A DNA stretch of 64,000 nucleotides from Trichosphaerium sp. ATCC 40318 (GCA_038496445.1 JALMLS010000640.1:62001-126000), one strand, 5' to 3'. Counted from the first letter of the stretch, positions 6,838 to 28,897 are shown. Program-made: numbers and translations. Notes: generated by a model not told the origin, from the letters alone.

Positions 6838-7483
6838 GAGTAGTGTAGGTGTTGTTTAAAACTAGCCGTTAATGAAAAAAAAAATAAACGCAAAAAAAAA
6901 ATAAAGAATGTCCGGTTTGTTGGCATCACGTTCGATGACAGACCTCTAAATATGCTCAACCGCGTGTATTTGAATGTATATAGCGTATTTATGGTTTAAA
7001 ACAGCAATCCTGACAGATTTTATGCAAACGCAAATTTTTTTTGGTTTTTTTTTTCGTAATTCTTTTGGCCAAAAGTGAAGAAAAAATTTCTCGTGGTTAT
7101 TTTTTTTTTGATTTGAAACAAATAAAAAATTAGAAAAGCGTTTGTCTCACGCTTTTTAAAAAACCTCTACAAGGTCTAATGCATGCATATCGCTTGCGTT
7201 GGGTGTCTAGTACACTGTTAGAGGGTTTGATTTGCTCACCATGTTCAAGTACTTTTCAACGTTACCAAAAAACTCAAACAAAGAAAAAAACGCTCTTTCG
7301 ACAGCGTTACAGAGAGCTCAATGCTGCACTTTCGAAATTTCCTCATGCAAGACTATGTAATGAAATCTAAAAAGGTTATTTTTACCAGCACGTGGAGTCA
7401 TACGAGACTATAAGTTTTTTGTTTTCTATCGTTTTATGGTACAACTTTTTTGGGGTTTTTTTTTGTTTTTTTGGGATTTTGAT

Positions 7484-10400
7484 TTAATCTTCATCTTCTT
7501 CTTCTTTTTTCTTCTCTTGCTTTGCTCTTTTGTTTGCTTTATGATCAGCAACAGTAGCAAGCTTTCTTTTTCTTTCAAACCTGCTTAGAGTATCTCTTGC
7601 GCCATAATTCTCAACAAGCTCTGATTTCTTGATACCTTCAGTTGCCAATTGTGCTCTTTCCATTGCTTTTTGTTCTTGTCTTCTTTTGACATTTGTAATA
7701 ATTTGATCTCTTCTTTTATTCTGTTTATCTTCCATAATCTGTGTATCAGACTTGGACTTCCCTGGAGCCACGTATGGTCTTTCAGAGCGTATCTCTCCGT
7801 CTTTTGTTTCTTGCCATTTATCCTTAGATAGGGAAGATACAGCACCGATATACTTCATGTCTAGAGCAATCATATCCGGCTAAAAACAAAAAAGGTTAAA
7901 AAAACGCCGGCATAAAAAAAGCAAGAGGAAATTGTTTTTGGTTTTTTTTTTGAACGGAACGTACTTGTATCTTCTCTAAAGCTCTCTTAACTACGCCTTC
8001 TCTTCTTTGATGCTTTGTTGTAAATGGATTCTCAACGTTACTGTCAATATTAGGTTCTCCAGAACCTGGTATTACAAGAGAAGAAAAGCCCTTGTAAAAT
8101 GTCAGAAACCAGTGGAGTGAAAAAATTACAGTTTAAACAATATTTTAGTCTCTTAAACCTTTAAACGTACATCGTAAGTTCCAACGCCAAGTACATCCTC
8201 GTATGGACAAAAATTAATGGAAGTTATTGGCGAATATGTCCTATGGTACACGTGAGATACGGTTTAAAAACAAAGCGAGCTATTGGATTTTTTCTTTTCC
8301 TTGTTTTGATTTTCCTGATTAAAATTGCTTACTTGTGCCTCATGTATGGTTCAGGTTTTGGTTTAGATTTCTCGGAGTCTGTTGAGGAAATATAATCCTT
8401 CCAAACTTCAACAATATTATCACGTGCCAAAGCAAGAAGTCCAAGTTGACTGAAACGAAGTAAATAAACAAAAACAACTCAAAAAATAATTTTCTTACCT
8501 GAACTTCACGTCTGTAAGACCACGACCTGTGTTGTATGTTTCGAGTTCTTTGAATGTTCTAAGATCCCACAATTTAACGGAACTTGGCCCAGCTGTGACC
8601 ATAATGCTACAAAATAGTTATGTTTAGAACCGTTTCGATTTATAAACAGCGTTTTCTTGCCAAAATGGTGAGCCTTACCGACCAGTTCTGTCAACATCAA
8701 TAGTAGATATAGCTCCTTTATGTGCTAATATTTGTGCGAGAGGTTTCTCTACTTTAGGTGCAATGAGTTTGACTTGTCCTAAAGCGAAGTGTGTTAACAA
8801 TAAACTGACAAGTAAACTAGTGATGGTTACCATAATCAGCAACATGAATAACACCATTTGTATGATTAAGTGCAATAGGATAACTAGGACGAGCGCTGAA
8901 CATTTTGCGACTGCATACTAAATCTCCAGTTGTAGAATCTTGATAGAGAGCAAATCCATACTTGCTCTGTTGTAAAGGAGTGAGCAAACAAATAATATAG
9001 AAAAAAAAGCGAAATGAGCTTGACGTACAACACCAAAAAGTAGAAAATGGTATGGTAGATATGACAAGTTTGTAGCGTGTTTAAAATGCTTTAAACGGCG
9101 TATTTCTGTTCCATGGTAGTCATAAACATAACAGTCTTCTTTTTGTGCTACAGCAAACATTGTCTCGTTGTGAAGAAATCTAAAGTTTAAAAAAATCAAT
9201 ATTTCTTTCATTCTTCCTGGCGTATTCACAAAAGAACAAAATACGCTGTTACGGTTTGATTACACCGAAGAAAACACGTGCAATGCAGTGTCATATAATA
9301 AAAGAACAAGAAAATTATGAGGAAGATAAACGCACGTGAAATCTTTGACAGTTTCTTGTAAAAATAGCTCACAATGAATATCACTTTTGTCCCAATCAAG
9401 AACAGCAATATGTCCTTTTCTACCACCCAGAATAGCTTCTCTACCACCTCTAAAGTACTTTGCTTTATAAGGACCAAGGTTCAACTCCAAATCAAATATC
9501 TACAACAAGTATTAGACAAGGGCAACAAACTAAACAACGAAGCCAAAAAAAAAATTCATCAAAAAAACAATTTACTGTATTTCGTTTTGTTTGCTTACTT
9601 TTTGTTTTGTTTGCATATCAATACCAGCAGATATTTCTCGTTGTGCTACACTAACAGTTGTACGATCTAGAAATCGATTAATTAATGATTAACCGTGAAA
9701 TCATAGGATCAAAAAAAGTCAAAAAACAACTTACCATCTGTTTCAAGGAAACCAGCGTCGGTTTGATTGTGTATAAGCTCCATACGTGCAGCGTCTATAA
9801 TACCTTTTTTAGTGGTTTTTACACGATACTCATTCTTTTTCTTGTGATGCCTAAAATTCACGTCCTATCTCGGGTGTCAGGTGATTTCTGTGTTATTTAC
9901 ATTGCTAGTATTGTCTACCACAAGCTATTGAGTCGTATAGACGTACTTGGGTGTTGACAGCAGCACCACGAATGTATTTGACACATTTATCCTTAATGGC
10001 AGTTGTATACTCCTTTTCTAGCTCTGGGTCGTAGAATTTGACGTCTGTCTCATCGAATTTTGTTGCCTCAAGCTTTGTTTTTTTTTGCTTCTTGAAACCG
10101 ATGCTAGGGCGTTTAGCCTTTGGTTTTTCGGCTTGTACGACGTCTTCTGGTGCTGGTGGCCATTGTTTACCGTAGTCCTTTTAAAATTAGTTGGAGTGGC
10201 GTGTTTCGGTTTTGTACGTACTGGGAGGAATCTGAGACCCTTCGTAGCTCTAATGTAAAATTTCTTGTTGGCTTCTTGCAATTCAACTGGCCAAATTAAT
10301 AGTATTTCTTGGCGTTATGACGTACTTGGAGCGTCTACGTTATTGTTTTGAGCCCATTCGAGCAGCGTAGAAAAAGCAAACGGCGTGATGCGTAATTTAC

Positions 10401-10545
10401 GTATGACATGATGAAATTCGAGCCAACCGCCTTTGTAGACTTGGGCCCTAACACCTAGACCTTCCCTGCGTGGCCCAAATTTTAAAATACGCAGCAAGCG
10501 GTGCACCATCGAACGGTTTGGCGTACTGCCTTTTGATTTGTCCAT
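7484..10545 (-). CDS. UTP7: WD40/BING4CT SSU-processome protein UTP7/WDR46 with an N-terminal Tpt1-like extension
   Basis: Motifs LGPYKAKY..GGRKGHIAVLDW, HNETMFAVAQK, LSYLPYHFLL, PGSGEPNIDSNVENPFTTKHQRREGVVKRALEKIQ. Canonical GT-AG introns keep the frame open back to ATG 10545. Confidence 0.93.
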
Positions 10546-10627
10546 GGTCAGTTACAGGAGAATCTAAAGAAAACAAGAATGGCGTGACTAAACCAGACTT
10601 AACGAACTATCACAGTACTCCACTGAC

Positions 10628-13600
10628 ATGTTCTACAGCACCAATGTAAGCTGCTCCATGATTTTAGAAGAATGGTCTATCAAAACGCACAAAGCGAATT
10701 ATAGCGCGTAATGAGGGTATTCAGGCGCCAAAGGCGTACGCCAAAGAAGTATGAGCACGTTCTAGAGTACGTAACCGAACGGACGTTCAAGTTTCGTAAT
10801 AGCATGTCACAGAACTACGCAAAAAGTTAGAAAATCAGCTAATAGTATGCGCAAGGACATTCTCAGGTATTTTTGTGAAAAAAAATTAACGCAAAGCTAA
10901 CATACAGTAGAGACGCGTCAATGGTTCGCCTAGGATCTGTTGCGCGACAGTTAGGTATTAAAGTGTTAGATGATTGGTATACTGTTACAAATGAACAAGT
11001 TAATAATACAGGTGGCCTTTACGTTACTTCTAAGTACGTTTTAGTATATTCTTTCTTCAAATAGCTTCGAGCAAAGCCATCAAATCCTATTTTCAGCAAA
11101 AAAAAACTGACTTTTGTTGTAGAGCCCATTGGTCACTTTGTCGATCACTTTGTATAATATATCCAAATCATGAATGGAAACCATGGAGATTTACGTACAA
11201 AAAATGATTTGACATTTATTTTTAATGGCATAACTTACATTAATCTGACAGGCAAGCTCCGAATTCTCATTGGGATGATATTGATAATCAAAGAATGTTT
11301 TTTGAACATCTTGCAGAGTTACATGGATTAAAGCTTTTTGAAGACTTTTACCGGTTGACACTAAATGAGATGAAAGCATTAAAAGGAAGGAAAGCAGGCG
11401 GATACATCATTTCAAAGTACATACATTTTGACATGTCTATTTTTTTTTTTTTGACAGAAATTTGTTCGTTTTAAGCCTGTCTGCTTGTCAACTTGATGCT
11501 TTAATTATCTGATGTTGGCAACACATGGAAAATTCAAATCTGATAGATGTACTTCATTGGCGTATTACAATTAAACTTAACTCAAGGTGTCAAGTTGCCA
11601 AGCGGACAGCTCAAATATTTTACACGAAAAAAAGTTGTTAACAAGCTTTTTTGGTGCTATCTAATACTTATTTTGTAAACTAGATATGGGTCATTTCTGG
11701 AAACTCTTGAGTCGGTATATCCTCAATATGAATGGGTTCCATGGCGATTCACGTGAGTTACAAACAACTTAAGTGAGGGTATTAATTATACTAAGTACAC
11801 TAATAGTAATACTCTCAAAGGTCATGAGATGCGTCAGTTTAATCGATATGCACAACAACTACGTGTATTAACTCTAGATGATTGGTATAGTATTAATATG
11901 GCAAAAGTCTTACGACTGGGTGCCAGCCACGATACAAACACGGGGTGCGTTCTGACAAAAAAAATAAAAGCGGATGTGCCGGTACTTTCTCTGCTTCCCG
12001 GTGAATATTGGCCTCCCAAACACTTTTCCATGCCTTATAAGGTTATACGTATATTGTGTTCAACCAATTATGGCGTCTAGATCCCACTTTAGGGGCTTCA
12101 GCCTGCTGTACTTTAAACATTCTTTAAATGCGAAAAGAAGCAGCAACAAATACGCTCCTCACTGTTGCTGATTTTTTATTTCAAGTCACAATCACTCTAT
12201 AGCTGATACTCTAATGGATATATTCCCTGATTTTGAATGGGAACCATGCCGCTTCCAGTGCGTCGGTTTTTATTATGAAATCTAGTTTAACGCGGGTTTT
12301 GTAGACGTGTTCCTTACCGTTATTGGAAAAAGATACAAGGATTACGTGTCACTTTCAATCACATTGGTAAACGTTTAAATGTTAAACATCTTGAAGATTG
12401 GCATGACGTACAAAGCCAAGATATCAATGAATTAGGTGATATCAGGCGTGTTCTAGATAAGTAAGTCTCCTTTACAAGGCGTACAGCCAGACAAAACGAA
12501 ACCAATAGTACTTTTTTTTTCTTATTATGCACTTCGAAAACTGTACTGTATGGTGTATTCTGGCTTACAAGATTTGTTTAGTTTCAATAGATCTGTTGCT
12601 AGAGCTGTTGTTACAATATTTCCTGAGTACCCATGGCACTTCAAGTGCGTAAAACACATGAAACGAACAACAAAACACAAAACTGTATGTTTATTTGTTG
12701 ATTATCCTTGTAGGCATATATCAACACGGCATGCTCAGGGACATTGGGATAACCTAAAAAACAGATTAAATTTCTTAAGAGATGTATCAATAGAACATGG
12801 CATTGACTCACCTAAAAACTGGTAAAGTGTCTATCGACTAATTTTGTTCAAAAGAGAAAAACAAACACAAAGAAATATGACAAATCTTATTTTCTTACTT
12901 TATTGCTTTTTACAGGTATCGATACTCAATAGGTAGATTCAACGGATACAGTGCTATTGGCATGGCAGCTCACTTCCAAGATTCCCTTTCCGATTTCTAC
13001 CCACGTGCTCAGTGGAACTGGAGCAACATCACAAGACTGAATAAAAAATCACATCAGAGGTATCCCGTCTTCATCTTCTTTGTTTAAACTCAGGGTGATA
13101 ATTAGACGTATTCTCGAAATGACAAGAATTTTATTCGGTTCACAATGTGTAGAAGAAGAGCACCCAATAGGTTTGAGACATAGTTCAGGGTTAGCACTAG
13201 TTGTAGATATCTTTGTACCGGAGTATAACATTGCCATTGAGTATCAAGGTAAACACAATGAATTTTATCTTATTTGCGAGCTACTAAACTATGTTCGTAT
13301 AAGGTGAACATCATTATTACGACGCTGTAAAACAAGTTCTTCCTTCCACAATTTTTGAAGCAAGAGATGAAGAGAAGATGCATCAATGCGAAGCAAGCGG
13401 TTCGTTCAAAGTTTTTTGAATTGTGTGGTTCTTTGTGTTGTTCTAGACTATTTTGAACAACAGTCAACATTGTCACTATGATTAAAATACGCTAATGAAA
13501 TACGCATGTAGGTATTACGTTGATACCTATTCCATACTGGTACGAGGAAAAGATTTGTTTATAAAACCTTATTTTTTTCAAAGGTGGGACAATAAGATAG

Positions 13601-26472: not shown

Positions 26473-28897
26473 CTAAAGCAATAATAGAGATGATAAGATC
26501 ATAACAAAGGATGCAATAGCTACGTTCAAAGTTGATGCAGGCTAAAGAAAAAAATACATAAGCATCAGGCAACAGAGAACAAACAAGAAAAATTTCCGAA
26601 ATAAACAAGAATAGACGTACGCTCGCATTTTCTCCTCTTCCAGCGATTGTGGATGACACGTGAACGTTATCAACATAAAAAGTTACAAGATCTTCTTGTC
26701 TTGCTTGGATCATAAATCCTGTACCATCAGCTCCACCTTTGGTGAGAGACCCAACAGGAATCGTAACCTACAAAGAAAAAAATTTTAGTTGACGTTCGAA
26801 AAATAAAGGGTACTTACTCTTGTCCATTCGTCTTTCTTCAATTCTCCTGGACTTGGTGCTGCAGCACTATCTGGTTGTCCGCCATTATTAGTATATATAC
26901 CAATCTGTATCTTAATATCCTTATCGGCACGCATCCACATGTTGAGGTTGTCGTCTGCAGCTAAACATTTTGGGTTGCTCTAAAATATAAGTTAGCTCTA
27001 TTGAAAACGAATACAAAAACACCACATACGTCAGGACAGACGAACTTGAGGCCACCCCAAGCACCAGTAATTTTACCACGACCAGATGTAGATCCGCATT
27101 TGACCGGAGATTCTACAATACTAGAAAAGGTAAGCACGTGCACAATAAAACAAAAATAATGAAAAAGGCCTTTTTTTGTGATCTGTGTTTTGTGAAGTTA
27201 TTAAAAGATACGTACGACCATTGACGATTCCAACCTTGCTCTTGGACTTTATTTTCAAGGTCATCCTCAAAAATATTAAAGCCACTGAACTCACATTCGC
27301 CACTACCACTGCTACCACTTGGTGTTGGAGTAGCTGCAGGCGTAGGCGTAGCGGAAGGTGTTGGTGTAGCTGAAGGAGTTGGAGTGGTTGCTGGTGTTGG
27401 AGTAGTAGCTGGTGTTGGAGTTGTTGAACTTCCACCGAATTGACTTCCAGTATCAATGTATTGAGTAGCACGGTTGTACATGTCTCTTGTGACAGAGAAA
27501 GTGATAGTCTCGTCAAAGATGGACGTAACACGAGCAGTAACTGGGAAGTTCATCATAGGAGCTAATCAAAAATAAGTTAGTTTTTTAAATGACAAACTCA
27601 GTAAGACTACATACTCGGATTGATGAACCTGTTTTGGCTATTTTCTCTTGTTAGAGTTTTCCAACCACCCTATGGCAAATATTAGCACCCAAGCAACATT
27701 CGTTGTCAAACAACAAAGAAAAGAGAACGACGGTGCTTTTTCAGAAACATAAAATTTTGATGAATGCAACGTACAAGGTTAAGTTCCATAGATTTAATAG
27801 GGTACTTGTGATTTCTAAGACTGATTTGACTGTAGTAGATGTTGTTCTCCTTCAAAGCAATTTGGATACCACCTGCGAAAGAGTACGTGAGCGTCAAATA
27901 AAAACAAAAACAAAGCAAAAAATCCTAAGAACAAAGTTTTTCTTTTGAAAAAATAGAAAACAGTTAGAGTCAGGTACCTGTAGTAGGACATGGAATACCC
28001 TTCCAGTCAATTACACAAATACCACTGGCAGCTATGGCAAAATCGACATGATTGTCTGTACACTCAGGACACAAGTTTGCAGCGAAAACCTTCAATGGAA
28101 CGCCTCTTGGGATTTCTGATCCGCATCCGCTACCACCCGTTGGGTGTACAGTCATTTCAGCGCACATTCCGCATTTTGCAACGAAATCACTCTAAGGGTT
28201 GACAAGTTTCATTAGAACGAAGTTCTACAAAAAAAACAAGAAAAAAATGATAACGGTTATCAGTTTCTCCTACAAAACCACGTTTCATTTCGTTTGAAAA
28301 AAAAACTTTTCAACGTACAACACCAGGTCCAATTGCTACTGTGTACATACCAGAGGTACCTAGGAATAACTTAGAGACCATACCCAATACACAAAATAGA
28401 ACTGGGTACGAAAAGAACAAAAAAAGTCTAGTAACGAACCTGATTCTACAGCGGCACCCATTGGAGTCCAGGCTTTATTACCAATTTGACCAAAACTACA
28501 TGGTCCGTTGCTTCCATCAACTATGGAACAAAAACGTTAGTCCCGGTTTGTAGGTGATATTTTCGAAATGTTTGAAATTGTAGTCTGCTTACAGTAACCG
28601 TATTGAGTCATCTAAATATAAATTGTTAGTTTGGGTCCATATAAATATCATGTCACGTGACAAAAAGAAAAAAATATCATCTTGAACTTTACTTTTGGCT
28701 CGTTTTTACAAACAAACGTTCAGTACCTTTTTACCAAGAGCTCCATCGCCCTTAAAGAGAATATCTGTCATATCTGAAATGGTTTGCGCATTTACGTAGA
28801 CGCATAGATGGCTATGGGCGAAAAACCAGTCAGTATAAATATGATGATATGTAGCGAGCTACCAGAGAACCAACAGAGCGAGAATCGTTGCCTTCAT
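26473..28897 (-). CDS. Expansin-like (DPBB + CBM63-type) secreted protein with PT linker, extra CBM-like domain and GPI-type tail
   Basis: Signal peptide; GPCSFG, TVAIG, CGMCAEM, NLCPECTDNHVDF, LRNHKYPIKSMEL, FPVTARVTS; (TPTPA)n linker; hydrophobic C-terminus VAIASFVMILSSLLLL*. Confidence 0.82.
27310..27425 (-). repeat. Coding 18-bp tandem repeat encoding a Pro/Thr linker
   Basis: About six imperfect units of TPTPA(T/S). Confidence 0.8.

Follow-up and report, generated by a model that had tools for sequence, protein, structure and literature searches.

A basic N-terminal module spliced in frame to UTP7 in Trichosphaerium sp. ATCC 40318, plausibly a non-catalytic relic of the Tpt1/KptA RNA lobe

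Does a core factor of ribosome assembly carry half of an RNA 2'-phosphotransferase at its N-terminus and, if so, what is left of the enzyme? This question is raised by the UTP7 gene in a stretch of 64,000 nucleotides (nt) from Trichosphaerium sp. ATCC 40318 (GCA_038496445.1 JALMLS010000640.1:62001-126000; this whole stretch is what we call the window, and positions are counted from its first letter). UTP7, also named WDR46 or BING4, is a component of the small-subunit (SSU) processome and is required for A0/A1/A2 cleavage. The original prediction for this locus held that two exons upstream of the UTP7 body encode a degenerate N-terminal lobe of Tpt1/KptA, catalytically dead and recruited to the SSU processome as an RNA-binding module. 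Here we find that the two exons are spliced in frame to UTP7, a conclusion that we hold with high confidence at the RNA level; that their product, judged from its residues, cannot be an RNA 2'-phosphotransferase; and that its descent from Tpt1 is plausible, if unproven.

The UTP7 gene is made up as follows.

10326..10545, minus strand: exon 1, with the start codon at 10545-10543; residues 1-73 and the first base of codon 74 (from translation and RNA contigs)
10327-10545, minus strand: whole-codon part of exon 1, 73 codons, with 1 nt left over
10325-10287, minus strand: intron 1, 39 nt, GTACGT...CCAG, phase 1; its joint is present in the spliced contig
10286-10222, minus strand: exon 2, 65 nt, residues 74-95, whole codons 10284-10222 (from translation and the spliced contig)
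10221-10178, minus strand: intron 2, 44 nt, GTACGT...AAAG, phase 0; here the module is joined to the UTP7 body
10177-9947, minus strand: exon 3, 77 codons; a Lys-rich linker leading into the first part of the conserved N-terminal region of UTP7 (..KYIRG..)
9864..7484, minus strand: exons 4-14; WD40 propeller, BING4CT domain and acidic/basic tail
8240-8171 and 8090-7965, minus strand: the BING4CT exons (Pfam matches)
7486-7484, minus strand: stop codon TAA (direct reading)

The full model, drawn from contig joints and direct reading, holds 2079 coding bases (693 codons) in 14 exons of at most 131 amino acids each, separated by 13 GT..AG introns. These introns are short (39-156 nt); seven of the 13 begin with GTACGT and the others with GTAAGT, GTAAGC (two), GTGCGT, GTAACC, GTAAGG and GTAAGA, and an AAG acceptor is used in two of the 13. 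Two codons before the ATG at 10545 stands a TAA, so that no earlier start is possible in this frame; exon 1 has another in-frame ATG at 10509. Intron 1 interrupts the Ile codon of DAPIELQ (A|TT), and the reading frame stays open over 95 codons through both joints, for which we estimate a chance of ~0.001 at the local base composition. The translations of the two exons (10545-10326 and 10286-10222) are as they were first quoted.

Is the joining of these exons to UTP7 real? Assembled contigs of four public runs were placed on positions 7300-12300 of the window, where they omit CT..AC stretches on UTP7 and GT..AG stretches on the plus-strand neighbour. As they are spliced, and as some of their ends carry template-switch-oligo or Illumina-adapter letters, they represent complementary DNA (cDNA). 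One of them, record 4 of run X1 (organism A), measures 381 nt at a depth of 6.3 and takes in 49 nt of exon 1, the 65 nt of exon 2, the 231 nt of exon 3 and 35 nt of exon 4, with joints at 10326|10286, 10222|10177 and 9947|9864; record 5 of the same run covers 10382-10532 within exon 1. The GTACGT...AAAG intron proposed to join the module in frame to the UTP7 body is borne out by this contig and by the absence of alternative start codons: the translation of exon 3 contains no in-frame Met, and the upstream exons must therefore supply the UTP7 start. The junction itself had been placed at 10164-10210, slightly off the true joint of 10222|10177.

Exon 3 also contains an out-of-frame ATG at 10164-10162 (minus strand), opening a 16-codon, Arg-rich open reading frame (ORF; MATSTRRRR.., span 10114-10164) which is probably meaningless, though no other ATG lies close to where the UTP7 body begins.

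Could the spliced form nevertheless be a minor or aberrant one, with UTP7 normally starting downstream at the next in-frame Met, in exon 4, and with exons 1-2 serving as a 5' untranslated region (UTR) or as a small gene of their own? Both critical joints are spanned by one contig from one run only, the two organism B cDNA runs cover nothing upstream of ~10138, and the 5' end of the UTP7 mRNA is unmapped, all of which would suit such a view. Set against this, the joint-spanning contig is unbranched in the assembly and as deep as the contigs of the gene body (2.7-10.5), a start in exon 4 would cost ~200 residues including the conserved KY.RG region, and a long in-frame opening over two introns would be unexpected for a UTR. 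Nor do the upstream exons look like a separate gene, in line with what had been supposed: the spliced contig joins them to the UTP7 body, and nothing independent speaks for the unspliced ORF of 76 codons. We consider a downstream start very improbable.

The body to which the module is joined is an orthologue of the SSU-processome β-propeller factor UTP7/WDR46. The BING4CT domain (NUC141, PF08149) is matched by exon 8090-7965 (57 bits, E=1.7e-15) and by exon 8240-8171 (27.3 bits, E=3e-06), both of which pass the Pfam gathering cut-off of 23.7, and a PDB search with exon 9499-9336 returned Utp7 (5OQL, 5WLC, 7SUK) and WDR46 (7MQ8) chains only, with E from 2.3e-13 to 6.3e-10. With UTP7/WDR46/BING4 of known structure (PDB 5WLC, 5OQL, 7MQ8) the protein shares the BING4CT domain, the WD40 body and the N-terminal blocks KY.RG...GFLE...FDLEL..GPY, whereas it differs from them by a basic and probably folded module of ~95 additional residues at its N-terminus. 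Indeed, the FDLEL..GPY block is found at about residue 240 here, but at residue 105 in the yeast protein, 130 in that of Chaetomium and 189 in the human one. Compared with the solved orthologues, the N-terminal region thus has ~50-135 residues more, in agreement with an addition of 95 residues. Run X1 differs from the window at six positions in UTP7 (7658, 8368, 8371, 9380, 9425 and 9799), none of them in exons 1-2, and the organism B runs are identical to the window, which probably derives from the strain, or the label, of organism B. Since all six differences fall on third codon positions, they confirm both the reading frame and purifying selection on the UTP7 body.

Where, then, does the module come from? 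Exons 1 and 2 were tested separately throughout. The Tpt1-like motifs noticed at the outset are indeed present, as L..L(K/R)..P...GL......GW in exon 1 and then IRA..G in exon 2: residues ~13-73 of exon 1 correspond to the helical part of a Tpt1-like module (L..LKF.P...GL......GGW), and IRATKG in exon 2 stands for the IRA.QG(HS) of Tpt1. The N-terminal RNA lobe of Tpt1/KptA/TRPT1 (PF01885; residues 1-85 of CthTpt1, PMC6333775) resembles the module in its length of ~80-85 residues and its N-terminal placement, and the two agree in the order and spacing of their motifs (L..L+..P...GL..GW ... hairpin ... IRA..G) and in the positions of their predicted helices. Unlike Tpt1/KptA, the module is attached to a WD40 protein and lies below every curated score threshold.

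The first pointer beyond these motifs came from a language model. In an ESM-Atlas feature search with exon 1, the three best matches were all clusters of PF01885 (PTS_2-RNA), with scores of 0.83-0.84 and 161-173 common features, and the ten best family-bearing matches all belonged to the family or clan of the best one; with the PF01885 clusters removed, the same search gave no usable match to any named family. A chance lead would be expected to land in a random family, whilst the sole family found here is the one that had been named beforehand, and this counts against a chance likeness.

Profile comparisons point the same way, if modestly. A first KptA profile, built from close proteobacterial relatives only (Neff, the effective number of sequences, 1.8), gave an hhalign P of 0.09. 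The alignment called A2, widened by tblastn of plasmids and 13 loci, holds 17 KptA sequences from bacteria and haloarchaea that are 33-64% identical. Against A2, hhalign places residues 18-54 of exon 1 on residues 17-49 of KptA (P=0.024) and the IRATKG of exon 2 on residues 79-84 (P=0.1), so that the order of Tpt1 is kept, with a spacing of 30 residues as against 29 in KptA. Local HMMER scores with a KptA hidden Markov model (HMM) built here are 1.6-3.1 bits for the two exons, values reached by 26 of 5000 shuffles for exon 1 and 80 of 5000 for exon 2. Full-length (glocal) alignment to the lobe profile sets exon 1 apart from its shuffles at z=3.9 (5/2000) and exon 2 at z=2.8 (19/2000). Taken together, the profile tests give p of ~0.003 for exon 1 and ~0.01 for exon 2, or roughly 3e-4 when combined, for a hypothesis stated in advance. 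With natural decoys in place of shuffles, exon 1 came second among 446 six-frame fragments in the glocal test, and was the best non-repetitive one of the window. No second copy of the module was found in the 64-kb window.

Two other stretches surfaced in these scans. The fragment ranked above exon 1 (27124-27549, minus strand) is a frame of 142 codons in which Leu, Gln and His abound (LLQHQ.. repeats) and belongs to no Pfam family; it scored purely through its composition, and might not be coding at all, or might lie antisense to a coding region of low complexity. The best match of the window to the full-length KptA HMM (9.7 bits, E=0.049 among 1535 fragments) lies at 7385-7483 (minus strand), in 33 codons in frame directly after the UTP7 stop (..PKKLYHKT..) that lie in a Lys-rich 3' UTR, and comes about through the motif LYHGT of the lobe that binds nicotinamide adenine dinucleotide (NAD+). 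Though it sits on the very gene that bears an N-lobe-like module, this likeness to the NAD+ lobe is most likely due to chance.

What of the fold? An AlphaFold2 model of exon 1 alone contains helices at residues 11-21, 41-51 and 55-67, but is of low confidence, with a predicted local distance difference test (pLDDT) below 50 for residues 24-35. Fold searches with it gave weak matches, mostly to winged-helix or helix-turn-helix (HTH) domains: Lrp/AsnC, MarR, MntR, DeoR and Z-alpha. The RNA lobe of Tpt1, for its part, has a winged-helix fold, in which a bundle of three helices packs against a sheet of three strands, and its nearest structural neighbour is the La domain (PMC6333775); the model is therefore compatible with a Tpt1 origin without discriminating in its favour. 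Judging from this model, the module may adopt a winged-helix fold, of which exon 2 would presumably form the β-hairpin wing. The module is strongly basic, with 18 Lys/Arg and 7 Asp/Glu in its 95 residues, and the Lys-rich linker that follows it (17 Lys/Arg, 13 Asp/Glu) is probably flexible between module and propeller.

Several results weigh against a Tpt1 origin, and they lend themselves to another explanation, in which the module is a genuine, translated extension of UTP7 with a generic winged-helix/HTH fold or a lineage-specific one, the motifs being a chance likeness. Pfam matched neither of the two exons, even at E<=10, leaving the curated PF01885 threshold unreached; a PDB sequence search with exon 1 found no Tpt1 chain; and HMMER searches with exon 1 against 1.84 billion representative proteins, a library that does not hold the query itself, returned no match at E<=0.001. 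Tpt1 never appeared when folds were searched with the exon 1 model, whose confidence is low, so that the structural match expected from the original prediction did not materialise with this poorly folded model, and the bacterial-type domains that were matched would suit a generic fold. The Atlas score stays below 0.9 and its 'recognition' value of 2127 below 2300, which by the calibration of the tool makes it a lead only; indeed, random sequences give a first match of at least 0.8 one-third of the time. Local HMMER scoring ranks exon 1 15th of 1535 six-frame fragments, the level of chance for a 64-kb scan. Nor did BLASTP align exon 1 to E. coli KptA in any meaningful way. A designed repeat protein, the sole PDB match of exon 1, was set aside as spurious, its score being the sum of eight weak repeats.

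A chance likeness would, on the other hand, have to account for an Atlas search that finds the family named beforehand and nothing else once that family is excluded, for two separately tested exons that both score in the register, order and spacing of Tpt1, and for the rank of exon 1 in the full-length profile alignment. We therefore regard an extension unrelated to Tpt1 as rather unlikely, though it is an explanation to be taken seriously. As for the proposed descent from the Tpt1/KptA N-lobe, it is upheld by the lead to PF01885 alone and by modest, collinear profile scores, and finds no backing in Pfam or HMMER matches; on this sequence evidence we lean towards it.

If the module does descend from Tpt1, what has become of the enzyme? 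The catalytic tetrad of Tpt1 is Arg-His-Arg-Arg, to which the RNA lobe contributes three residues and the NAD+ lobe the fourth (PMC6333775), and in alignment A2 it corresponds to the invariant R21, H22, R69 and R125 of E. coli KptA. In the register given by hhalign and HMMER, R21-H22 (LRH) becomes Lys-Phe (LKF); R69, the Arg of the K-x-R motif, falls on Ala-Pro-Ile at the exon 1/2 junction when the register is extended by hand at ungapped spacing; and the QGHS of Tpt1 reads TKGL. The stretch IRATKGLRFLP then runs straight into the Lys-rich UTP7 linker, so that the NAD+ lobe (HGT ... R.YVHLS) is absent and the fourth Arg with it, and the full-length KptA HMM aligns only its N-lobe columns to the two exons. 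The changes foreseen here, RH to KF, a lost K-x-R and a missing NAD-binding lobe, can thus be read from the sequence and from the alignments alike. With all three active-site residues of the N-lobe replaced and the NAD+ lobe absent, an enzymatic role is excluded on the grounds of sequence.

Such losses might also be expected of a sequence in decay. Exons 1-2 could be a remnant that was exonised recently and neutrally, perhaps from a decayed Tpt1 paralogue beside UTP7, and that provides no more than a start codon and a basic leader, having neither folded structure nor function of its own; the disappearance of the catalytic residues and of the entire second lobe, the lack of any detectable relative in the HMMER search and the low confidence of the single-sequence model would all be in keeping with this. 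Yet the frame is intact through 95 codons and two phase-compatible introns, and in the lobe the hydrophobic and Gly/Trp/Pro positions of the core persist whilst only active-site positions have changed. Between strains there are no differences over the 265 nt of the module as against six in the gene-body contigs, a contrast that is weak and not significant alone. On balance, we find a functionless remnant distinctly unlikely.

The reading that we prefer is that of a UTP7 orthologue with a basic, 95-residue, non-catalytic module, most likely taken from the N-terminal RNA lobe of Tpt1/KptA, that acts as a nucleic-acid or protein handle; as a whole, with its functional part included, we see this proposal as evenly poised. 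Exon 1 would give the helices and strand 1 of the RNA lobe, exon 2 its hairpin wing, and the Lys-rich linker would tether the module to the UTP7 propeller. Two things speak for RNA binding, the strong positive charge of the module and its low-confidence, winged-helix-like model, and they suggest that it may indeed bind RNA. In yeast, Utp7 acts together with Sof1 and Utp14 to organise the A1 cleavage site and to stabilise U3 upstream of the 5' hinge, and makes contact with the 5' external transcribed spacer (ETS) (bioRxiv 10.1101/175547). The module could then play its part in the processome as an additional handle for nucleic acid, or possibly for protein, which would help UTP7 to dock close to the A1 site, U3 and the 5' ETS.

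Are there precedents for such an arrangement? In fission yeast, a Tpt1-Yae1 tandem protein joins a Tpt1 module to a second domain in a eukaryote, and there the RNA 2'-phosphotransferase domain is reported to be complete and essential (PMC12810181), whereas only a degenerate half of Tpt1 would remain here. The La motif, a winged-helix RNA-binding domain without the active-site residues of Tpt1, offers a functional analogue of a non-catalytic RNA handle; the module shows no sequence or feature match to it, and the exon 1 model is only weakly like wHTH domains of bacterial type. Our literature search found no paper that mentions both Tpt1 and UTP7, and at the sensitivity of HMMER, which detects no relative, the module seems restricted to its lineage.

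UTP7 is a conserved core factor that helps to hold the A1 site, the U3 small nucleolar RNA and the 5' ETS in the SSU processome, and to our knowledge folded domains are only uncommonly added to such factors; where this happens, it shows ribosome assembly being remodelled in a lineage. Should the module truly be a decayed Tpt1 RNA lobe, it would make a clear case of one half of an enzyme, a pseudoenzyme, reused as a non-catalytic binding domain, and would offer a handle on what the winged helix of Tpt1 recognises apart from catalysis. Perhaps one could go further, and imagine that the Tpt1 RNA lobe has turned into a free-standing, non-catalytic reader shuffled between genes, which on UTP7 reads an RNA end or a phosphate mark on precursor ribosomal RNA or on U3 near A1. 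This is a long shot, but if true it would couple the chemistry of RNA ends to the assembly or quality control of the processome. If the likeness to Tpt1 is due to chance only, what remains is a lineage-specific N-terminal extension of modest interest.

Upstream of UTP7, on the plus strand, lies a divergent neighbour at 10612-12300, an expressed and spliced gene with introns at 10767-10908, 11034-11122, 11195-11251, 11417-11683, 11753-11806 and 11944-12184, which encodes repeated modules of the form ..LGIKVLDDWY....GG...SKYGS...YP.YEW.PWRF. A tblastn match at 10666-10773 (E=1.4) raised the possibility of a kinship between these repeats and the module on UTP7, which we rejected, as no likeness is seen on inspection. 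The two genes are separated by a short interval.

10546..10611, no strand assigned: gap of 66 bp between the UTP7 start codon and the 5' end of the neighbour cDNA (record 14 of run X3, which begins at 10612 with template-switch-oligo letters)

This gap is likely to be a promoter region shared by UTP7 and its neighbour.

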